Assembly: GCA_965637545.1 (NCBI GenBank)
Contig: OZ281501.1
Coordinates: 806,001-870,000, forward strand
Reading direction: 5' to 3'
Length of the DNA: 64,000 nucleotides
From: Phallusia mammillata
Taxonomy: Eukaryota
Both the position numbers and the translations under genes were made by a program. Numbering within the stretch: position 1 is the first letter of the stretch; each line of letters opens with the position of its first letter. Of the stretch, positions 23,001 to 50,453 are shown piece by piece. A model generated the notes under the pieces. That model was not told the origin of the DNA. It ran no database searches and worked only from the letters and a program-made list of their open reading frames with translations.

Positions 23001-26000
23001 CGAGGTTTACAAGGACCTTGTTACCTTGCTCAGAGAGAAATCAAGCAAGTTTTCTGAAAACATTGCCAAGAGGGTTGGTAGTTTTTTTTATTCTTAGTTT
23101 TATTTTCTGTGTTTATGTGCACTTTTTCGGGAATTTTAGTGAAAAACTAAAAACCACTAAATTGGTTGCTTTAGTTTATTTGTTTGTAAAACAATTAATT
23201 GGTTTTTATGCTGAAATTTCCTAAATTTGATTTAATGACCCTGAAAAGAAACATACACGCCAATATATTTGTAAATAACATGGCCAGTCTCTTTTATTTT
23301 TTACTTTCATTTTGGGACTATGTTGTGAAAAAAGCATTTTGTATTTAATATACACAGAGAGACAAAATATGGAACCGGCTATCCTAGTAAAATGTTTTGA
23401 TTTTTTTAAATACAAACCAAATGAAATCACCCAAAACTGATAAACCAAGATTTTATTGTTTGCAGGAGTTTTCTATCCAAGAAGATATATCGAGGGAATT
23501 TGAGAAAGAAGCGACGATAACTTCGGATCAGTCGGCTGAGAATGAGAAGGAAGAAGATGCGCCGTCCGAGAAACAGCAGAAGACCTTGAAAGATGGTGGA
23601 AAGAAAGGTGAACGAAAGAACAAAGCGACACAATTGCACTAAAACAATCACCAAGTCGGAAATAGCTGCGCAACGTTATGGAGCGCAAAACAGTGATGGC
23701 ACAATTGGTATAACGCGCTGCAGCCACACCGTGTTTAAACAATATCCGAATGCAAAAAATGAGAATTGTAAATAGCCTGTAACCTATACAACAACGAAAC
23801 AACAAAAAACGTAAACGCCTGCGAAACTACACATCTACTCGCGTTAAGGCTGTTCTGCTTTTGTGTTCCTAGCTAAGGAACGATTGAATAACGTAACAAT
23901 TATTTTCAGGTAAAGCGGGCAAGGATAAGAAACGGACCATGCAACCGTCTCTAAAGTGGAAAAGTTTGGAGGAAAGTCGGAAAACTGAGAAAATTACGGA
24001 ACAAAAGCGCAAGAAGTCACAACCAACGACCAATCAGATCGCACCAAGGCGTCCTTCCTACTTCAAGTAAATCAACATTAGCTACCGTTTTTTTTAGATT
24101 ACAGAGTGTCCATTACTAACCGAAGGCCTTATTAGTTTGGCGTTGATGTATGCTTCAACTATAAGTAAAAAGAAAGTGGTTAAGATAAACATATACATTC
24201 ATACTGGGATCAGCTCTATGTGCCTATGCAAACCACCGACCGTGGCATACTCATATACCATAGTACGTTAGGTCTATTAAAGGCGTTACCGATATGTCAT
24301 GGCGTAGGCTAGAAACATCTCAATCCCACAGAAAAATCTAGCCTGTGCATTGCCATATGCAGTGCCGGATTAACCATTAGGCAAACGTGCCTACAGGCCA
24401 GTCAAAAATCCAGGCCACTTTGTAACAACGATCTTTGCGACAATGATTTGGCAACACTGATAATTATAATTTTTTAGTTGGCAACCATGATTTTCGGGCC
24501 ACTTATAAAATGTGCCTACAGGCCAGCAGACCCTTAATCCGGCACTGGCCATATGGGAATGCTTGGTGGCCGACTGATTCGGTATAACGCCTTTAATACG
24601 CCCGGCGTAATATGGTTTAAAAAGAAGGCGATTAACGTGGACGTTTTGGGCAACTTTAAGCAAGTAAATAGTTTGTGAAATGAATATTTGTTGAAAATCA
24701 AAAACAGTCCCAAAACGTTGTCGAAACTATGTAGCTGCAAGGTGCGATTATTACTTAACAGCAGGTCACAGACGAGGTTATGACGTAACAGACGTTTTAT
24801 GTTTGTTTGTTGAAAGAAATTCAGTTTTATTGGGAGTTGTTGCAGTGAAAAGTTTTCAGGCAGAATTTGTTTCAGGATTTCCCAAAATGGACGATCATGA
24901 GTTGGACGATGCTGAGATTAGAAAGAGTCTCGTTTATCTTAAGCAGCTGTAAGTACAATATGTTTGGTTTGGTTCATTAGTTTTGTAGAAAAGGTTTTTG
25001 ATTTAAAGTAAGTTTAATCGTAGAGTTATAGCTTAGCACAGCATATAAAGTGAGGCAAAGTTATGAAAGGTAATGAAGTAAAAAAGTGATTTCGTCCATC
25101 AGATATCCAGTCTCAAATATATTTTAGTGATCTTATGTTTACAATCCATCACTTATAGATTTATTAGAAAACGGCAGAAATGAGAATAATATTTTTTGAA
25201 TTTGTTTAATGAAATTTGGCCGATTTTTCTTTTAATTACATTCACGATATAGAAGTTGTAATGATGACCAAGACAACACTGTCTGTCATATACCAGAGGT
25301 GTTCGAAGTGCGGCCCGTGTAGGCTTATATTCCGTGGTGGGATTCAGCCGGTTCGAAATTTAATGAGATCAGCGAACCGGTTAGCATTACTGGTAACTGT
25401 CAATGGACTTTTTGTGATAGAACCGGCTAAAAAATATGACTTTTGTGATAGAACCGGCTGAAAAAAAATTTGAATCCTACGCCATAGTTTGGATTAAGTT
25501 TTTGGGTTGTGGCGACTTTCTTTAGCAGTCAAAAAGGAAATATACACGGTGCTGACGCAACAAAATCTGACAATTTCTTTAAAGCCCGCATATTTGTCTT
25601 CTAATTCCACGATTAAAAACTTCCAATAAAGGTCGGCCCGCGGGCATCTTCGCCTGATAAACATTTGGCACTTAGCGGAAATTCCCAAACCTGGCTACTG
25701 TGAGTTCTTACGTTAGTAGTTCTACCTAAAAATTCCCCCATTTAAAAAGTTTGTACACCCCTGGTCATACACGCTCCATAATTCTTTATTATTATCTCCT
25801 ATTTGTTACGTCACAGCCGAAAAACTCCTCTAGAGGATGAAGACATGAGTGAGAGTTCGGATGAATCAGATGAAGAAGAGGAAATCCAGGATCGGAGGCA
25901 GGATGCTGGATCAGACCTTCCATCGGAGTACTGGCAGATTCAGAAGTTGGTAAAGTATTTGAAGGGAGGCAACCAGACTGCCACCATCATTGCTCTATGC

Positions 26001-31673: not shown

Positions 31674-34600
31674 CCACAAGTAACACATGTTGATGTACAT
31701 CACACTGTCAACGTGAGTTAACCTCGGTTAAGGTCGTTTAACCCAAACTTTGCATGTTAAACCAGCGCAACGGCCGCTCGTATATTCGTTGAAACTAGTC
31801 TTGCTTACCTCGTACTTCTGTTATCTTCCATCAGCTTGCAAACCACTATAGCCGAGGCTACCAATTACGGAAAGTGCGTGCAACGTGAATCACTTTTACG
31901 TCAGACAGCACATTTCGTTGACGTTGCTCACGTGACATGTAATCGTTTTGAAACTGGAGTACCTGTTCCGAAGTTCGCGGGATGTTCTTTAAAGGTTAAT
32001 GTGAATCAAGTACTTTAAACTTCCGATAACAAGATGTTTTAAAGGTGAAACTTTAGGTACAAAAGGAAGTTTTGAAAACGAACCTTTTTTGTGATTCAAT
32101 AAAGTTCACAATAAAGATTTTTGCAAGCCTGTTTCAACTTTAGACAACATCATAGTATAAAGTTCAAAGAAAAGCTAAAAATAGTTTTATTCGCATTTCT
32201 GAAAAATCTGAGCTTGCACGCACAGAAAGACAAACGACTCAGGACGCGGTAAACTTTGTTTGTTGCTGCCATCAAATAATTCTGCCTCTAAGATCGATCA
32301 CTGGTTTATAACATTTGTTTGTCGTTTGTATCAGGGATTAAGCAAGATTTTGCCTGTATTCAATCTGACCATGAAAATTGAAGGTATGCAATGTTCTGCG
32401 GTTGCAAAGTTTGCACACTAATCCCGAATCATACGTTGCTTGAAACTGATTATACGATTTTTTAGTTATATGTTGGTGGAATGCAAATACTCTGGCCTTT
32501 TTTGCGTTATTTATTTCAGAATTATATTCTTGCATACAAAATGTCTTCAACCAACAATGAGGCAAACCAAGGAGTAAACGACGTATATTGCAGTCGCTCA
32601 GTAAAGATAGCATAATAGGACATTTAGAAATTGTAGAAGTAAACCATTGCACCATACATCCAGGAGATTACTTTACATCAAGTTAACCAAACAAAGATTA
32701 CTTTAACCTTTAACCCCTCAATCTCTCGGTTTATGTGTCGCATAAATAGGCCTGGGGCGTTTAAACCGGACGTTTTTCAAACTTGGCAAGAAACGCGAAA
32801 AATGGCCGAAATTTTGGTGAAAAAATATCCCTATTTTTCCCCTGCAATCATCTTTCGAAAATGGATCACAAAATTTAGATACTTTGAAGAAGTCACTAGA
32901 AGAACGCACGTAGTACAATGACACAGTGACCAGAAGGACAATAAATAGAATTCTTGATATTTTCTATCTGTCAAATCGTATTGACGTCATCTAACTTTCA
33001 GAGCGTAATGTTCTCGTCGTGTCATTGTGACGTCAGAGCATACTTTGATGACTGAACGATCGACGTTCGACAATAATGAAGTCACGTGATCGGCTATGCT
33101 GGCCGCGGGACGACTCCGTTGCAAATTCTGCGAAAAAATACCTGGTTTGAAATTCTATTCGAATAAGGCACTGAAGATGTTCCTTATAAGTGAAATATAT
33201 TTGTTCTTATAAAGATAGCTAAGTGAGTTTAACCTGGAAACAAACGTTTCCAAACGTGTGGTTTGAAATTGTTGGTCTACAAATAATATGATTTTCTACA
33301 ACTAAGTATTTTATTATCTTATTCAAAATCGTTTATGCAACATTTAAATAAATGATTCACTGATTTCAGAAATGATTCATTCATAAAAAAATAACGACAA
33401 CCTTTTTTTGTTTTTTTCCCGCAAACTAGATTTTCTCATTTAAACAGTAAAGAAGTTTTGAAACTTGACACAACATTTACCAAAAACGCTTTTCTCACCA
33501 ATTTGCGGTTCTATTGTTCACGTCACAGACACAAAGCGCAGAATTTATATTTAGCAAAAAGATTACGTGCCCAACAGCTGGAATGATGTTACACTGCGGC
33601 CGGTTGTCATGGTAACGCTGATGTTTTTCAACAACAGGTTTCTATATTTGTTACCAAACCCGAGGAAGGCATCAATTTTCGATAAACTATCCCGTGTGTC
33701 GGTTTCCATAGGTTTTAATGTGACCACAAACATGTAATTACTACAGTTCTTCGGTTATAGCGTCTATAGTTCTGTTTGTGGGTCTGTCTTGGGCCCTTCT
33801 CATATATAGTTTTGACATTCCGTAATACTAACAATTGCGCAATTATAATAGTCTGTTTATGTATAATACGTTTGTCTTAATGTTTAAGTTCGACGAAAAG
33901 TCTAATAGCCTATTAAGAAAATTATAATTTCACTAATATGACCGGTTTTGTTCTTTTACTTAAAAACAAAAAACAAATTTCTTTTTAACAAAAAACAAAT
34001 CTATTCTCTTTGAAAATAAAAAACATTCTGCCCGTTTACTACAGTTGGATATGCGTTATCATTTCTAACACCATCACATTGTACTATTGGAAGATATTTT
34101 CATTTTATCGTAACTATTTCATGGCTTGGCGTGAGTTGAAAACTTGGCGAAAGGTCACACACCTTGTGCATTGTAGCAATAATAGTTGCTTTCGCTGCCT
34201 TTGGTACGTGACAACAGAACACCAAGCGCCGTGGGAAGAAAATTTTGGAAGTCACCAGTTTTTGCGCGTGTTTTGCATCACGAACATTTTAATCGTTGCC
34301 CAGCAATCACCACGATTTTGCTGCACATGTTTCTGTGCTTTTCAACGGCTTTAGGTAAACAATAATCTTTGTTAAAAAGTTTTTAGGTATTCGTTTTACT
34401 ACTGCGTAAACTTTGGTGTCTGGTTGGACAAATTTGGCAATTAAAATAATTTAAAAAGAATGGGAATAAAGGCGGATCATTAACCCTTTATGTCATTTAT
34501 TTGTTTAAAAAGCATTAAACATGAGAAATAACTGGCCTAAATAAACTTACAAAACTATACTTGTTTTGCTTTTTAAATGTTTCGGTAAAAGATCATGTCA

Positions 34601-36229
34601 TCAGAAGTCATATAAGTTAAGTTGGTTTTATCACAGTTTTGCATTGGTAGCCAAGCATTCCACACAAATTGTAATGCATCGCAATTTTTTTACGCACGTG
34701 GGTTTTTTCCGCAGGTTCTGCAGACCCGGATTAAAACACGAAAGTTGTCAACAAAATTTTGAAGGTCGCATATTTCCGATATTTATGTCCAGGCGTTTTT
34801 TGAAACGACCACTTTACACGACTAATCGCTACATTTCCGCCCTGCTAAAGGACGGGTTATGCCAATGTACACACTGCGTGGAACTTAAAATTTCCCTTTG
34901 ATGTCTAAACAAAATATAATCTGATTGGCCCGTTTGACGAACTACGTCTATATAGTAAACACACTTAAATATTTTTCAGTTTCTTTTTAATCATTTATCC
35001 AGTTACTATCTATTTGGTATTTGTTTGCTCGCTTTTGTATTGCTACGTTTTATTTATGGGCACCAGTGCTCTGGAACCGATTTGAGACTTAATTATAATT
35101 AAAACTGTATGCCAAGGAGCTTGTACATAACGGTGTGCTAAGATAACTATAAATTGCATTTAGCAATAATGATGACCAGCGATTGTAGGGACGTTTTCGA
35201 TGAAGTCGCAGGCATAATGCGTATGTTACAAACTTAACACCAGAGCTTCTGTTCAAAACATTTATTACTACGCGAGTTGTAGAAATTGAATTGGGACTCA
35301 TCTGAGTTTATACTTGCTGCAAAATGTTAGCCAAAACTATGTGGCATGATTGCACAGTCGGCTATAGTAACTGATACATTTGTCAAAAACAAAGATTATG
35401 TAATATATTGGTCTCAAACACATAAAATCCGCAACTTATGCACTGTGAGCTGCATCCGAAGTTAAAGTGAAAAAAGTGCATTGTTGGTTGCATGACGCAA
35501 TTGGCTTACAGCAGCTATTTTGCGCACGGCGGCATTGCGCAGTTCAATGCCCTTTTACTTCGATAAACTCACGCCCCTTAGGGTACAGGATTTGTCACGT
35601 TCGCTTGCAATTTCCGCCGCTTGCGGTCTAAGTAAAACTGCATGGGAATCATTTGACGCCCAAAAATTATGCCAACTTTCGGCCTGGGGCAAAAAAACTT
35701 TGCAAACGTGTTGGTGAGATATTTAATTGAGCCCAAAATTTTAAGCTCAATTTTATTTTGAGTTGGAAAATTTAAAGAAAAAACACCGAAAGTTTCGGAG
35801 CGTCGCCGCTTTTACACAATGCTATGTCTACGTGCCTTAATATTTACGTATAGTTACCTCAACATGATGGGAATTTCTTGAATAATTCGGTCTCTGAAAA
35901 AGAAAGAAAACAATTCGGTAATTTTGTGACCAAAATCGTGAATTGCGAAATTTAAATAATTTTGCCCAAACCCTGCTCCAAATATAAACTATAAGGCCAA
36001 GATTGTCGTGGTAGGACAAAGCGGTTTTGCCGCAGGTATCAACAATATTGGATTTTATATTCAGACTTCGTTGTAATTCGAAAACCGGGCCCACAAAAAA
36101 TATAACCATGCAATAAAGCAGTGCTATTGACAGAGAGTATGGGCCCCTATTTTATCGCCCCCTCAATAAAGACAGCAACAAGTCATATATGTGTAACTTC
36201 ACTTTCCATAATATTGACCCAGGGTTGCT

Positions 36230-36490
36230 CAGTGCCGGATTAAGGGTCTGCTGGCCTGTAGGCACATTTTATAACTGGCCCGAAAATCAGGGTTGCCAAC
36301 TAAAAAATTACAATTATCAGTGTTGCCAAATCATTTGTTGTTGCAACTATAACACAGGGTACCGTGCAAAAACTTGGTCATATGCAAAATAATTATTTTG
36401 AAAACATGACTAAATATCTGATTTTAAAGTGGCCTGAATTTTTGACTAGTAGGCACGTGCCTACTTTGCCTAATGGTTAATCCAGCACTG
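36230..36490. mobile_element. hAT-type MITE (family A), longer copy, opposite orientation
   Basis: Same TIR (one mismatch) and 8-bp TSD GGGTTGCT; internal sequence shared with 24360-24547. Confidence 0.92.
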
Positions 36491-36642
36491 GGGTTGCTGT
36501 ATAGTACGCTCAGACGTTTTAAGATTCCAGATGTTTTCGTGCGCGAATCTATCTACTACATGAGCTTAGGCTTTATTTCATGGTTGTAGAGTTTTTTACT
36601 TAAAATTTTCTTCATCATAACTTAAGGACAAATCTTTTCCAC

Positions 36643-38926
36643 TCAACAAACCTGCATTATAAGTAGGTCAGCTAGCTCCCCATGCAGTTTACGAACTTTT
36701 AACACCAAAGGTCGTAGAACCCGCGATGAAACAGATTGACGATGTGTGCGAGCGTACGCCTGCAAAAACTTCTCAAAATCCCGCAGAAATTCGATCATGG
36801 CTTCAATCGATAATTCCGGGTTTCCTGCCTGAGACAAAAACATTTGTTACGTCACAGTTTCATAAAGGAAGCTGTGAATTGTGACGTCATAATGGTTATT
36901 TATGTGACCTTATGATGGTGTCACAATTTACATGTTACATCACAGTCAAAATCACACATCTATTATTTCCCCATATTGTTAAACTTTCTACAATTTTCTT
37001 ACAAATTACAAAACAAACAAATTGTCATCATGGTGAAATGTAAATAGCTTCTCATGTCACAAATCAACGAACATTTTCCAACTTTTTAAACTCACGTTTT
37101 TCACTACAGAAAACAGGAAATGCTTTCTTGTTGACACGTAAAATCTGTTATTTGCAAGGGACCTAATTCAATCCAAAAATATTCCCCAAATGGCAAGCAA
37201 AGGGGCATTTCACTGTACAACATATTAGGGACAAAAATATTGGCGTTTTAGGTTTTAGAGAAGACATCCTCTACTCATTTAAGTTGTAGAGTCCTAATCA
37301 TGTTTTTGCCTTGACCGTCGGGAAAGACCGCCGACTATTTTGCACTCGGCAATGGAAATGAGTGCATATGCAACTGCAATCTGCGATAAGTTAAAATCGT
37401 CAACGCAAGATCCAACATTCCCAGATCTTTGTAACTCGGGTTTAACACAACCTATGGCAAATTTAAATCATCGCAAGCTTGTTTTTGTCCGGGACATTTT
37501 TTAAATTCTGAACCAAGGTTTTTTGTTTATGAAGCGATTTCGGGCGTGCCACTGTATCGGGGGATGATACTGTTATGCAAGCCTTGTAATCGTGATTGTA
37601 AGTGAGATAACAGATGGACATCAGCGCTTGCGGCATCGTCGCGCCTTTAACACTCTCAGCTTCCAAAGATCGCTACTGTCACACCGACTATTAAAGTCAG
37701 TTGTTTAAATCGGAAACTATACAGCATTGCTATTATCTACAATTTTTCGCATAATTGAGCACAGCACCGGGCCCATTGAAGGCATGAAACCGAATCTAGG
37801 TTTTACCGAAAGAAAATCTTTATTCCTTTGTTTATCGTGCACTGTACTAGTCGCATTCAGTGTTATTTACCCTGATGAAGACGACCTGTATATAGGACGT
37901 CGAAACGTCGGAATAAAATCACATTTGCCAGAAGAGCTCTTTAAACTTGATACTATGCCTGGCAGCAATAGCTTATACATAGAAAATCTTTATCTTTTAC
38001 AAACGTTTGGTTTTCCTAACTTCGAAAATATGTTCGTGGACATTTTACGAAACAACAAAGCTAGCCAAAAATTGACAAAAACAAAATACTTTACAAAATT
38101 ACTTGTCTTAGCTAACTGTGTTTTAACCATAATACTACAGAGATCGACACTTCGTGGACCAACATCTAACACAAGGGCTCCTTCATATTTTTATCCCACC
38201 TTCCACGTTCATATTATTCTTTCAAAATAGAGTGTTTATGACCGACATGCTTGTGCCAGCTAAAATTGAAAAATCACCAAGGTGTTAGCGGCTGTTACCC
38301 CGGGTGAAAAGCTTCAGTTTGGTGTTCTAAAGTCAATTGATTTATTTTGACTTATTGACATAAGCTCTTTTCAGCAATATAGGTTTTATACGTACACGAT
38401 ATGCAGTACAGTAAGTTTCCTATATTGAAAAACCGTTGTTTAAATTAAATCACATCCAAAACCTGTGTATACAAAACTCTTGACAAACTGAATGAACTGC
38501 CACATATTGTTTACTTGTTTGGCAACAACTGGTACATCAGTTCCTTATTCAAATAGAATCTATTTATACTCGGAGTTTCATTGTTATAACACTTACCGTG
38601 ATTCGCGTATGTTCGGATGCGCTCAGGTTTACTCCGTCAGAAATCCAAATCTCACGACTAAAAGTTCTCGCATTTCGCGATAAAATTGTCTTTAGAGCGG
38701 CAATGTCCCTTCTGGCTCGCTTGCACAAAGCACCAGCCGCGTGTTGAGATGAAACTCCGCGTTTTGTCCGCGACAACTCCATTTTGTTCGTGGACTCCTT
38801 AAAACTGGAGTGGCCGAGAACGTACGCTGCTGACGCAAAGGAGGTTGCTAAATACGCCAGAAGAAGAGAAGCGACGATCACTCTGCTCGGGTTCTCGATC
38901 AGTGACGCAGCGACAGGTATTCGCAT
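36643..38926 (-). CDS. Orphan secreted helical protein (cytokine-like or prohormone-like); C-terminus uncertain
   Basis: Exon 1 38926-38597 (110 codons) has a signal peptide, RTKR at residues 53-56 and a GTAAGT donor in phase 0. Exon 2 starts at 36828 after TTTTGTCTCAG in phase 0 and reads AGNPELSIEAMIEFLRDFEKFLQAYART...VRKLHGELADLLIMQ. It ends either at VC* (36643, AATAAA at 36577-36572) or at a GTTTGT donor after 36652. Confidence 0.7.
37862..37916 (+). ncRNA. Minimal type-I hammerhead ribozyme motif (Penelope-like variant)
   Basis: TTATTTACC-CTGATGA-A-GACG[ACCTGTATATAGGA]CGTC-GAAA-CGTC-GGAATAA: intact core, stem II, palindromic ACGT in place of stem III, GUC cleavage triplet. Confidence 0.72.
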
Positions 38927-39024
38927 CGTTTTCTGCGAAAGTTAAACCCACGTGGTTCGTAAGGTGCCTGGCTCTACCTGCTGCTGCCGTGCCCTGCCCA
39001 CTGGCATGAGTCTACTATGGAAGC

Positions 39025-39031
39025 TTATATA
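39025..39031 (-). promoter_or_regulatory. TATA box of the orphan secreted-protein gene
   Basis: TATATAA on the minus strand about 100 nt upstream of ATG 38926. Confidence 0.55.
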
Positions 39032-39847
39032 CGTTGGAACCGCTTTCGGTCTTGGTGTGTTTTAACTCTTTCTAACCGAATTTTCGGTTCCACGTAAATT
39101 TACAAGTTTTTAAATTATTGTTATGTTATGAGAACAGACTATTGCCGGGAATACACAATCTATATCGGGGACTGCTTTATATAACGGATCTGCCGCTTGC
39201 ATTTGTTGTTACATCACATGCATTACCCCCCAAGTTTACCCATTGCCAAGCATGTAAGGTCAAAGACATTTCTGTGCATCATAATTCTAAATCTGTCAAA
39301 AATACTCACAAATCGTCAAAAGGAAACAAACTCCCGACGGACATTTTCTTTTTATTTCCTGCTATCCTGCTTTGACCCGCCACCAACAGAGAGAGAAACT
39401 TGAGAGTGAGGGAGAGCAGCGAAATTATATCATTGAATCCGACTGAACGACGCGCCTGAAATGACTGAAAAACTTTGCTGACAGTCGTCGTCGCACGGCG
39501 GTTTGCCCCTGGGGTATGCAACAGGCCCTCTACACGCCGCAGCCAAAAACGTCGGCGGGAACGGTCAGTCGAAATATAGACGTGGTGTTTTCTTCCGTAA
39601 CGAGCGCCTCGGCGGCCTGTGCACGGGGATTGCGGCAATTTCAACCCGCCCCGAAAATGCCCGGATCGTGATATGTGCGATGAAATTGAAATCAATCGGT
39701 TCCTGGGAATAGCTCAGGGCGCTCCCTGCACAGCCAGTCGCATCAACTCGGAGATTAAAACCCCAAGGGCTGCAAATATTTTCCAAACTCTCCCCTAATT
39801 GTGTTAAGTTTCAAAACATGTGATGTGATGAATATTTAGCATGTGGA

Positions 39848-41576: not shown

Positions 41577-44500
41577 GGGTTAGGGTTAGAGCCTTGGAGT
41601 TAGGGTTAGGGTTAGAGATGGAGTTAGGGTTAAGGTATGTTGCGATATAGTTATGAAATTTCAACGTTATAGTTTTATGTAAAGTTGAAGTTGTGAAAAT
41701 CTGATGTAAAAACCATGGCATGGAATCAACACACATGACATCATGTTTGTAAGGTTAGGGTTAGAGCTAGGGTTAGGGTTAGGGCATATTGCGATAGTGA
41801 TGAAATTTTATCGTTGTAATTATATGTAATGGTAAAGTTGTGAAGATGTGTATGTGCATACCATGGTATGAAATCTGCCCAAATGACATTACGTTTGTAA
41901 GGTGAATGTATAGGCTTTTGGTTACTTAGGGTTAGAGCTAGGGTTATAACCCTAACCCTATAGGATTACAGCTATTTTTTACAGCGAGTTATGGTTAAAG
42001 CTATAGGCGTTGGGGTTAGGGTATCTGTCATATAATTTCAACGATGGGAAAATGTATAAAATTACCACCATAAAATTTCATCGCATGATAGTATTTTTAT
42101 CTGGTGAAGATAAGGTTTTCTGTTAGTTAGGGTTGGAGTTATTGAGTTAGGGTTAGGGTATATAGTTATGAAATTTTATCGATGTGATTTTATGTAATGT
42201 TAAAGTTATGAAAATGTGTAATATGTAAAAGCCATGGCATGAAATCAACATGCTTGACATCATGTTTGCAAGGTAAACGTTATAAGGCTTTTTGTTACTT
42301 AGGGTTAGAGTTGTTGAGTTAGGGTTAGGGTTACATATTTAGGGTATATCAAGAAATAACCGAGCTACTACGCTGCAAAATGGAAAAAAAATGTTTATAC
42401 CATGGCATGAAATTGACAAGATAAACTTTCATCACATAAAAGTATATATCTAAGTTGAGGGTTATGAGTTTTCGTTTGGTTAGGGTTGGTGCTATTGAGT
42501 TAGGGTTAGGGTTAGTGCTATGGAGTTAGGGTTAGGGTTGGTGCTATGGAGTTAGGGTTAGGGTATATCGCGATATAATCACCAAGTTATGAAAATTTAA
42601 GGCGTTAATACCATAGCATAAAATTACCACGATAAAGTTTTAACTCATGACAGTATTTCTATTAGGTGAGGTATCGTTTTTTTGGTAGTTGGGGTTGAAG
42701 CTATGGGGTTAGGGTTAGGGTTAGAGCTAGGGTTATAACCCTAACCCTATAGGATTACAGCTATTTTTTTCAGCGAGTTATGGTTAAAGCTATGGGTTTA
42801 GGGTATGTGCGATATAATTTCAACGTTGGGGAACTGTATAAAAATAACCACTGTAAAATTTCATCGCATGACAGTATGTTTATATGGTGAGGATGAGGTT
42901 TTTATTTGGTTAGGGTTAGAGCCTTATGCGGTTAGGGTTGTAGATTTAGGGTTATGGTATATCGAGAAATAACTAGGCTACTGCGCTGCAAAATGGATAA
43001 GATGTTCATGCTATGGCATGAAATTGACAAGTTAAACTTTCATCTCATTAAAGTATGGATCTAATTTGAGAGTTTGAGGTTTTCAGTTTGTTAGGTTAAA
43101 GCTATTGCGTTATAGGGTTAGGGTTGAATCTATGAAGTTAGGGCACATCGCGCTATATTTACAAAGTTATAAAAAGGTATGAGACGTAATTACTACAGCA
43201 AAAATTGTCCCGTTAAAATTTCATCGCATGGCAGTATGTTTATTAGGTGAGGTATCAGTTTTTGAGTAGTTAGGGTTAAAAGCTATGGAGTTAGGGTTAG
43301 GGATATGAAGATAGGGTTAGGGTTGGTGCTATTGAGTTAGGGTTAGAGCTATGGAGTTAGGGTTAGAGCTATGGAGTTAGGGTTAGGGTTCGATCTATTG
43401 AGTTAGGGTTAGAGCTATGGAGTTAGGGTTAGAGCTATGGAGTTAGGGTTAGGGTTGGATCTATTGAGTTAGGGTTAAAGCTATGGAGTTAGGGTTAGAG
43501 CTATGGAGTTAGGGTTAGGGTTGGATCTATTGAGTTAGGGTTAGAGCTATGGAGTTAGGGTTAGGGTTGGATCTATAAGTTAGGGTATATCGCGATATAT
43601 TTACAAAGTTATGAAAAAGTATAAGACCTAAATACCTTAGCATAAAATTATCCCTGTAAAATTTCATCACGTATGACATGTTTATTAGATGATCAGGTAT
43701 CAGTTTTTGAGTAGTTAGGGTTGAAGCTTATATGAACTTAGGGTTAGGGAATGTTATGGTATATGGACATATAAATTAATACAAGGTTGTGAAAATGTAT
43801 AATATGTGAATACTATGACATGAAATCAACACGAATGACAATATATTTGTAAGGTGAGGAATAGGCTTTTTGCTATTTAGGGTTAGAGGTAGAGTTATAA
43901 CCCTAACCCTATAGGATTACAGCTATTTTTTACAGCGAGTTATGGTTAAAGGTATGGAGTTAGGGTTAGGGTATGTGGCGATATAATTTCAACGTTGGGA
44001 AACTGTTTAAAATTACCACTATAAAATTTCATCGCATAACAGTATGTTTATAAATTGAAGGTAAGACTTTTTGTTAGTTAGGGTTAGAGCCAGAGAGGTA
44101 GGGTTTGGGGGTGTCTAAGAAATAACCCAGCTACTACGCTGCAAAATGAACAAGATGTTCACACAGTGGGATGAAATTGACAAGATACAATTTTATCACA
44201 TCAAAGTATGCAGGGTGAGGGTTAAGGTTTTCCTTCGGTTAGGGTAAAGCTGTAGAGTTAGGGTTAGGGTTGGAGCTATGGAGTTAGGGCATATCGCGAT
44301 ATATTTACAAAGGTATGAAAATGTTTACCCCATTAAAATTTATAATCACATATGATATGTTTATTAGGTGACAGGTGAGGTATCAGTTTGTGAGTAGTTA
44401 TAGGGTTGAAGCTATGGTATTAGGGTTAGGGTTGGACTTAGGGTTCTTGTAAGTTGTGAAAATGTATGTAATAAAAACCATGGCTTAAAATTGTCACGAT

Positions 44501-49256: not shown

Positions 49257-50453
49257 ATGTTTGGTCCACGATTTAATGAACAAAAACTAAAAGTCAACTT
49301 GGGTTTGGTTCAAACCCGACTTAAACTGATTGAGAAAAAGAAAACTGACCAAGCCCTTCGAGCAAGACCAGAAATTGCAGATTATGTCAAAAATGCAAAA
49401 ACGGATCGTGCTCGCGTCCGTGTGGAGCACATTATTCGAGAAGATTATCTAGTTGAAGCAATGGAGCTGGTCGAAATGTATGCTGATTTGCTAGCGGGAA
49501 GAATTGGGCTTATGAAAAGGTCCAAAGTACTTGAAGAAAGTCTCAAAACACCAATTTCAACCTTAATTTGGGCTGGCCCACGTCTTAGTCAATATTGTCA
49601 AGAGCTCACAACCGTTCAAAACATGCTTGGTGCGTATTATGGCAAGAAGTATGTGGAAGCGTGTATGTCAAATCAAGTTGGCACGGTGTGTGAAAGGGTC
49701 ATGACTAAAATGGATCCTTCGCCACCAAAAAAGATTCTTGTGGAACGGTATCTTATTGAAATTTGTAAAGCTTCAAATGTTGACTTTACACCCGATCCAA
49801 GAGTCATGGAAGAGGAGTTAGAAGGAAGTCGGCCCGCTATTGATACCGACTTCATGGACTTCAACAAGGACTTTCCAACGGGTGGTGGTGGCTCTTTTCC
49901 TGGTGGAAGTGGAGGTGGAGGGTACTCTGGTGGGGGAGGTAATGGCGGCGGCGGTGGCGGCGGTGGTGGCGGAGGGGGACAGGTTGACCCGATTCCATCT
50001 TTCAGTTATGCAGCTGCTGCTTCAGCTCAATACCAACAACCACAGGCTCCATACCAACAACCGCAGGCTCCATATAATCCTGCCCCAGTACAACCAAATA
50101 ACCTACCCCCATATTCTGCAACTGATCCCAACCAACAGGAAGAAACAAAACAAGCTCCTCCACTTCCTCACAAGGATCCTGCTGGTCCTGGAAAAGTTGA
50201 TCTGTCAAATGAACCAGAAGGTGTATCTGCTTCATTACCAAGTTACAACGATTCACTCAACGCTCCTGGCAGCAGTCGTCCAGTGGCAGCTCCACGCAGT
50301 GCCTCTCCAGGAATACCAAACCTGCCTTCAGTTCCAACTAATCTTCCTCATGGTAGCATACCCGGGCCGGATAATAATTCAACTGGTAACAATGATGATG
50401 TGGATTTTGATGACCTCTCAAGAAGGTTTGAAAACCTCAGGAAGAAAACCTAA
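49257..50453 (+). CDS. IST1: IST1 homolog (ESCRT-III-associated), single coding exon, 398 aa
   Basis: Ist1 domain (RLKLIEKKKT...ARVRVEHIIREDYLVEAME), MIM2-like PNLPSVPTNLP and C-terminal MIM1 DFDDLSRRFENLRKKT. Gly-rich and Pro/Gln-rich linker. Confidence 0.97.
   Translation: MFGPRFNEQKLKVNLGLVQTRLKLIEKKKTDQALRARPEIADYVKNAKTDRARVRVEHIIREDYLVEAMELVEMYADLLAGRIGLMKRSKVLEESLKTPISTLIWAGPRLSQYCQELTTVQNMLGAYYGKKYVEACMSNQVGTVCERVMTKMDPSPPKKILVERYLIEICKASNVDFTPDPRVMEEELEGSRPAIDTDFMDFNKDFPTGGGGSFPGGSGGGGYSGGGGNGGGGGGGGGGGGQVDPIPSFSYAAAASAQYQQPQAPYQQPQAPYNPAPVQPNNLPPYSATDPNQQEETKQAPPLPHKDPAGPGKVDLSNEPEGVSASLPSYNDSLNAPGSSRPVAAPRSASPGIPNLPSVPTNLPHGSIPGPDNNSTGNNDDVDFDDLSRRFENLRKKT

Follow-up and report, generated by a model that had tools for sequence, protein, structure and literature searches.

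The 64,000-nucleotide (nt) window analysed here comes from the sea squirt Phallusia mammillata (GenBank assembly GCA_965637545.1, contig OZ281501.1, positions 806,001 to 870,000 of the forward strand; positions below count from its first letter). It contains a minus-strand gene for a small helical protein that is predicted to be secreted. The gene is real, transcribed, spliced and expressed, and its frame of 227 amino acids (aa) is complete. A four-helix cytokine-type fold is probable for the product. That the protein is a secreted long-chain four-helix cytokine of the sea squirt, acting as a class I JAK/STAT ligand, is a tentative reading, though a quite plausible one. More tentative still is the full proposal, which describes a furin-activated tunicate class I cytokine similar to erythropoietin (EPO) and thrombopoietin (TPO), with a disulfide between helices A and D, control by an upstream open reading frame (ORF), and an orphan gp130/Domeless-like or CRLF3-like receptor. 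Membership of the IL-6/LIF/CNTF family, suggested by the first-pass annotation, is not supported by the sequence, as one testable feature of that family is lacking.

Contigs from four sequencing runs were compared, three of them RNA-like (from two studies) and one DNA-like. The RNA nature of the runs is a guess, but splicing is what would produce joints that excise introns exactly and do not occur in DNA. Joints 38597 to 36828 and 36652 to 35893, on the minus strand and with GT-AG ends, are present in contigs of all three RNA-like runs, and neither joint occurs in the contigs of the DNA-like run. The first of these had been named in advance as a test of the gene. The transcripts bear out a spliced minus-strand gene with its ATG at 38926, a first coding intron (38596-36829) in phase 0, and the use of a phase-0 donor, at 36651, where helix C ends, all as previously annotated. 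In two RNA-like runs the loose end of the contig past 35858 matches the window from 33127 onward in 30 of 30 letters, behind a normal acceptor. The coding exons measure 330, 177, 36 and 141 nt, and the three coding introns are all in phase 0 (0-0-0). The last exon encodes helix D and the second cysteine, and the stop codon is at 32989-32987. The earlier gene extent of 35234-38926 is too short, with the last exon (33127-32987) missed and the stretch down to 35234 belonging to intron 3. The parts of the gene are as follows.

39310..39455, minus strand: 5' exon of 146 nt, outside the coding region of the main protein, with two upstream ATGs; contiguous with 38932 in the contig
38899..39344, minus strand: upstream ORF of 22 codons, with its ATG at 39344 in the 5' exon, spliced over the first intron
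39024..39031, minus strand: TATA-like TATATAAG, within the intron that separates the 5' exon from coding exon 1
38597..38932, minus strand: coding exon 1, ATG at 38926, aa 1-110, phase-0 donor, seen in spliced contigs
36652..36828, minus strand: coding exon 2, aa 111-169, helices B and C with their short loop, phase 0 at both ends
35858..35893, minus strand: coding exon 3, 36 nt long and flanked by phase-0 introns, covering aa 170-181 at the beginning of the C-D loop
32987..33127, minus strand: coding portion of the last exon, with aa 182-227, the stop, the remainder of the C-D loop and helix D
32504..32986, minus strand: 3' untranslated region of about 485 nt, its extent judged from contig tails

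Contig tails past exon 3 comprise 624 and 618 letters and put the end of the transcript at about 32504-32510, by an AATAAA (32515-32510). Two other last exons were considered and ruled out: the acceptor at 35683 is intronic according to the transcript contigs, and the FEQKLW stretch near 35250 sits in intron 3. At the other end, the main contig splices 38932 to the upstream exon 39455-39310 (contig letters 1174-1319). Its 5' end lies right after a pyrimidine-rich AG (39455-39475, minus strand), with no RNA depth upstream to 39700. A 5' exon directly behind an AG acceptor fits spliced leader (SL) trans-splicing or a further, unseen upstream exon. The TATA box formerly assigned as the promoter (39031) falls within the intron that the main contig removes. 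A minor contig, with roughly one seventh of the depth, extends over this intron, and a secondary promoter may therefore be located there, upstream of coding exon 1.

The upstream ORF is out of frame with the main ATG, has a good start context, and stops 28 nt beyond the main ATG. Because it overlaps the main start out of frame and in good context, lowered translation is expected, and it probably damps the synthesis of the protein. Coding contigs have zero letter differences from the assembly and intron contigs have several; as contigs break at variants, this identity is a weak hint of constraint. Low-depth contigs span the first intron and intron 3, which is consistent with unspliced RNA. One low-depth RNA-like contig (34539-35887, minus strand) continues past exon 3 into the following intron. 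Should it represent a stable isoform, its frame would stop six codons past exon 3 and would lack helix D. The gene is single-copy within the 64-kb window, which contains no N.

The protein is divided as follows; coding exon 1 carries everything from the signal peptide through helix A and most of the A-B loop.

38828..38926, minus strand: predicted signal peptide, aa 1-33, from hydrophobicity and small residues at -3 and -1
38759..38827, minus strand: pro-segment, aa 34-56, terminating in the furin consensus RTKR
38666..38737, minus strand: helix A, aa 64-87, basic and amphipathic, from hydrophobic moment and AlphaFold
within coding exon 2 (36652..36828), minus strand: helix B, aa 118-138, from hydrophobic moment and AlphaFold
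within coding exon 2 (36652..36828), minus strand: helix C, aa 146-168, from hydrophobic moment and AlphaFold
33029..33103, minus strand: helix D, aa 190-214, from hydrophobic moment alone

The signal peptide was judged by eye and by hydrophobicity. Its hydrophobic core covers aa 16-33, and no further hydrophobic stretch, and so no membrane anchor, is seen in the 227-aa frame. RTKR at aa 53-56 (38770-38759) is a perfect furin site. Signal peptide, pro-segment and furin site are thus present as first annotated. The predicted mature part has 171 aa, a mass of 19.4 kDa and an isoelectric point (pI) of 10.65, with a net charge of +6 in the helix A region. It contains two N-glycosylation sequons, both within loops, and exactly two cysteines. 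Cys68 (38725-38723) is at the start of helix A, and Cys211 (33040-33038) is at the end of helix D.

Such a precursor could also be a prohormone that is cleaved at RTKR, at KR/RARR and at other basic sites into short peptides. The signal peptide, the perfect furin site, and the KR, RR and RxxR motifs that recur along the protein agree with this. However, KRARR lies on the polar face of helix A, the best-predicted helix, with a predicted local distance difference test (pLDDT) score of about 90. The peptide released between the basic sites would be a 12-mer that ends in cysteine and lacks an amidation glycine, the 227-aa frame contains neither a Gly-Lys/Arg-Arg amidation signal nor repeated peptides, and the remainder is predicted to form ordered amphipathic helices. 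Because the second basic site is part of helix A, and amidated or repeated peptides are absent, the prohormone alternative of the first-pass annotation is weakened and now appears very improbable.

The four predicted amphipathic helices, A to D, are 24, 21, 23 and 25 aa long, and the A-B, B-C and C-D loops are 30, 7 and 21 aa long. The helix lengths and the 171-aa mature part fall within the ranges typical of long-chain class I cytokines, namely 20-30 aa per helix and about 160-200 aa in total. Helices A, B and C are confirmed as first quoted. A pattern score was used that describes four ordered amphipathic windows with long-short-long spacing, a rule taken from cytokine geometry. The candidate scores 0.48, compared to 0.22 ± 0.10 in shuffles; its score is reached by 2 of 2000 shuffles and by none of 120 all-helical IST1 domains. 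What the score demonstrates is genuine helical order, not family membership. AlphaFold models exon 2 alone as a helix-loop-helix with a mean pLDDT of 87, and the mature part of exon 1 as one helix with a pLDDT of 86-92 over aa 67-86. All three phase-0 coding introns fall outside the helices. An up-up-down-down bundle requires long A-B and C-D loops (PMC7378365). The long-short-long loops, the phase-0 introns between helices, and the lone cysteine pair support the cytokine plan. The first two criteria by which lamprey IL-6 was found are a length of 150-280 aa and a signal peptide (PMC13081863), and the candidate agrees with both in length and signal peptide. The long-chain four-helix architecture put forward at first is partly upheld: helix D in the true last exon, the loop lengths, and the cysteine pair speak for it, and a link to cytokines by any search is lacking.

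The same helices are compatible with proteins that are not cytokines of class I. One alternative is a four-helix secreted non-cytokine, such as a cationic furin-activated antimicrobial or a tunic or matrix protein of this ascidian lineage. The high pI of 10.65 and the charge of +6 around helix A suit a protein of this type, a signal peptide with pro-segment and furin site is common in defence proteins, no homolog is present in the sets searched, and amphipathic helices by themselves do not reveal a receptor. In contrast, a defence or matrix protein does not need the loop pattern, the phase-0 introns between helices or the end-to-end cysteine pair, all of which match the cytokine plan, and the window holds a single copy of the gene. 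This explanation is unlikely, albeit a serious one.

Another alternative is a four-helix ligand of a receptor tyrosine kinase that is not coupled to JAK. IL-34, CSF-1 and SCF have the same up-up-down-down fold, so the helix and loop pattern cannot discriminate between the two kinds of ligand. Helices of 21-25 aa and a core of 171 aa are, however, long-chain dimensions; the membrane anchor is absent, Pfam gives no match, and nothing speaks positively for this type. A tyrosine kinase ligand is accordingly judged a slight prospect.

The gene layout also recalls class II helical cytokines of the interferon/IL-10 type, which would act via sea squirt class II receptors. Candidate exon 3, short and placed between the exon for helices B and C and that for helix D, is reminiscent of exon 4 in interferon and IL-10 genes. 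Two lamprey interferon genes, Ifn2 and Ifn3, likewise have four coding exons and intron phases of 0-0-0; classical interferon genes have the intron phases 0-0-0-0 (bioRxiv 10.64898/2026.05.30.728932). On the other hand, the candidate has only four amphipathic helices, compared to five helices in interferons and five or six in class II cytokines overall. Its 21-aa C-D loop has a low helical moment, and only four high-moment windows are found, a measure that a short non-amphipathic helix could escape. Pfam and PDB searches of the candidate exons remain without a match, and no secreted protein with the interferon fold emerged from a structure screen that had the tunicate Styela among its species (bioRxiv 10.64898/2026.05.30.728932). 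A class II cytokine is thus improbable.

For the preferred reading, a class I cytokine, the following mode of action is proposed. The predicted signal peptide would be removed on secretion, and predicted furin cleavage after RTKR would free the mature part. Helices A-D would pack as one up-up-down-down bundle. Because the start of helix A adjoins the end of helix D in this fold, Cys68 would be near Cys211, and a bond between them may tie the two helix ends together as in thrombopoietin and erythropoietin. The basic mature protein may be held near its source by matrix glycans and act at short range. Two class I receptor chains, gp130/Domeless-like or CRLF3-like, would be paired and turn on JAK/STAT signalling, with helix D and the A-B loop as putative site I and helices A and C as putative site II.

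IL-6 has a tryptophan hot spot for site III at the start of helix D (PMC7378365). Across the gp130 family this hot spot is either Trp or an FxxK motif. The last exon of the candidate has no Trp or Phe, its sole aromatic residue being Tyr222 near the C-terminus, and FEQKLW is intronic. The IL-6/LIF/CNTF label is dropped because helix D starts without the site-III aromatic, and for the same reason the protein would work more in the manner of erythropoietin, thrombopoietin or growth hormone (GH) than of IL-6, LIF or CNTF. A hydrophobic patch at aa 89-95, early in the A-B loop, might replace the missing aromatic.

Sequence, profile and fold searches were run exon by exon, with queries of 46-110 aa. 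A phmmer search of exon 1 against 1.84 billion representatives found no homolog. A word-based search of exon 1 found no relative among proteins of 60-192 aa, the only lengths it covers, so that full-length kin are out of its range. Pfam gives no family for exons 1, 2 and 4, and only a sub-threshold match to a ribosomal L29 helix. Single-exon queries have no match among PDB sequences, and nothing informative among ESM Atlas features. The lone metagenome match (L001), on the strand opposite a bacterial copper ATPase gene, is due to chance. Blank searches with such short single-exon queries speak neither for absence nor for novelty. Lamprey IL-6 likewise escaped sequence and profile searches (PMC13081863).

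Several points nevertheless weigh against the cytokine interpretation. The gene has no intron after helix A, and an N-terminal furin pro-segment is unusual among vertebrate class I cytokines. The spacing rule in the pattern score was set only after the sequence was seen. The up-up-down-down topology is deduced from loop lengths, and an A-D disulfide is just as compatible with an up-down-up-down bundle. When the B-C hairpin was used for fold searches, the hits were generic hairpins, with no cytokine among the top 50 (best Z 7.4, best Foldseek E 0.59), and no sequence, profile or fold search ties the candidate to any cytokine or to anything else. By motif counts in the promoter and 3' untranslated region, AU-rich elements, NF-kB sites and STAT sites occur at background level. 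The synteny search in other tunicates, recommended with the original annotation and carried out via the neighbouring genes EIF1 and IST1, gave no ortholog in the fetched flanks: the three large exons have no match in those of Clavelina, Ciona and five other ascidian-like sets.

The candidate (minus strand) sits between ARMC4-like exons (plus strand, about 23-31 kb), a label read from ORFs only, and EIF1 (plus strand, about 46-47.5 kb). The EIF1 exon matches the Phallusia protein with 100% identity. IST1 (49257-50453, plus strand) shares 99% identity with its Phallusia mammillata counterpart; its ORF is intronless here, in Clavelina and in four other ascidian-like contigs. EIF1 adjoins a ubiquitin-conjugating gene in both Clavelina (L011/L012, 10001-14862) and the window. 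IST1 adjoins a VWA gene in Clavelina (L007) and in the window, with changed order and orientation. The EIF1 pair and the IST1 pair of Clavelina are 1.5 Mb apart on one contig. A 166-aa gene of Clavelina lepadiformis about 8.4 kb upstream of EIF1 (L011 1-1597, plus strand) was tried as an ortholog and rejected, having no significant similarity to the candidate exons. It has helical-looking exons and extends past the end of the fetched locus.

The introns of the gene contain further elements. The 16-nt Ciona spliced leader, whose sequence is taken from PMC7986045, occurs letter for letter at 38559-38544 (minus strand) in the first coding intron. No GT donor follows this copy, and it is therefore not an SL RNA gene; it may be the 5' end of a trans-spliced RNA that was retrocopied. 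The same intron comprises a very high-copy repeat at 37820-37977 (plus strand, antisense to the gene), with a depth of more than 1 million in the DNA run. This repeat has a hammerhead-like core (CTGATGA at 37872, GAAA at 37902), and Rfam gave no score. A second very high-copy element is located at 36230-36490 in the intron after exon 2, with a related stretch at about 24400-24660 (shared ORF text). Between the candidate and EIF1, a satellite at 41577-44289 consists of TTAGGG-containing units with periods of 20-66 and a strong G skew.

Class I cytokine receptors are present in tunicates, the sister group of vertebrates: Ciona has two, one gp130-like and one CLF-3-like (PMC1963337). Yet annotation up to 2025 lists neither a leptin nor an IL-6-family ligand for tunicates (PMC12284397). 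A GH-like protein is present in amphioxus (PMC9546618). Structure and gene layout led in 2026 to lamprey IL-6 (PMC13081863) and to the lamprey and lancelet interferons (bioRxiv 10.64898/2026.05.30.728932). No tunicate four-helix cytokine was found in the literature searched, which leaves out most subscription papers. CRLF3 is an orphan receptor that is reported to respond to erythropoietin in insects (PMC6797617), and the candidate is a possible ligand to try on it. With a complete, expressed, single candidate gene, the ligand question can be tested directly in Phallusia, which is well established as a model in embryology. The candidate is held back by the lack of a homolog, with its cytokine fold inferred from the helix and loop pattern and single-exon models. 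If the reading is true, it is among the first long-chain class I helical cytokines of any tunicate; if the fold is not that of a cytokine, it is an ordinary lineage-specific secreted protein.

Compared to known cytokines, the candidate is similar to thrombopoietin and erythropoietin in its four long helices and in the absence of the site-III aromatic. In erythropoietin, helices B and C share a single exon of about 60 codons, an arrangement also seen in the candidate. In thrombopoietin the disulfide C28-C172 joins helices A and D (PMC10850085); the candidate shares this A-D cysteine placement, with its bond being predicted. Translation of thrombopoietin is under documented upstream-ORF control (PMC3045505), and the candidate also has an upstream ORF. 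In contrast to both proteins, it lacks detectable sequence similarity, a second disulfide, and an intron in the signal peptide or after helix A, and it has an N-terminal furin pro-segment and an extra small exon in the C-D loop.

The candidate resembles the IL-6 family (IL-6, IL-11, LIF, CNTF and OSM) in its size range, signal peptide, four long helices, long-short-long loops, and three coding introns within the helical domain. As in lamprey IL-6.2, there is no intron in the signal peptide (PMC13081863). It differs from the family in that helix D starts without a Trp or Phe for site III, the cysteine pattern is not the same, and the introns are shifted, with none after helix A and one in the C-D loop.

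The Unpaired proteins of Drosophila, the ligands of Domeless, are secreted, basic, helical JAK/STAT ligands without detectable similarity to vertebrate cytokines. By description, the candidate is like them an invertebrate, secreted, basic and helical protein with a putative JAK/STAT role, whereas the Unpaired proteins are longer. It lacks the GH/prolactin cysteine pattern of the amphioxus GH-like protein and the fifth helix of the lancelet and lamprey interferons. In common with these early-chordate helical cytokines, the candidate is traced by gene layout and predicted fold, and not by BLAST.

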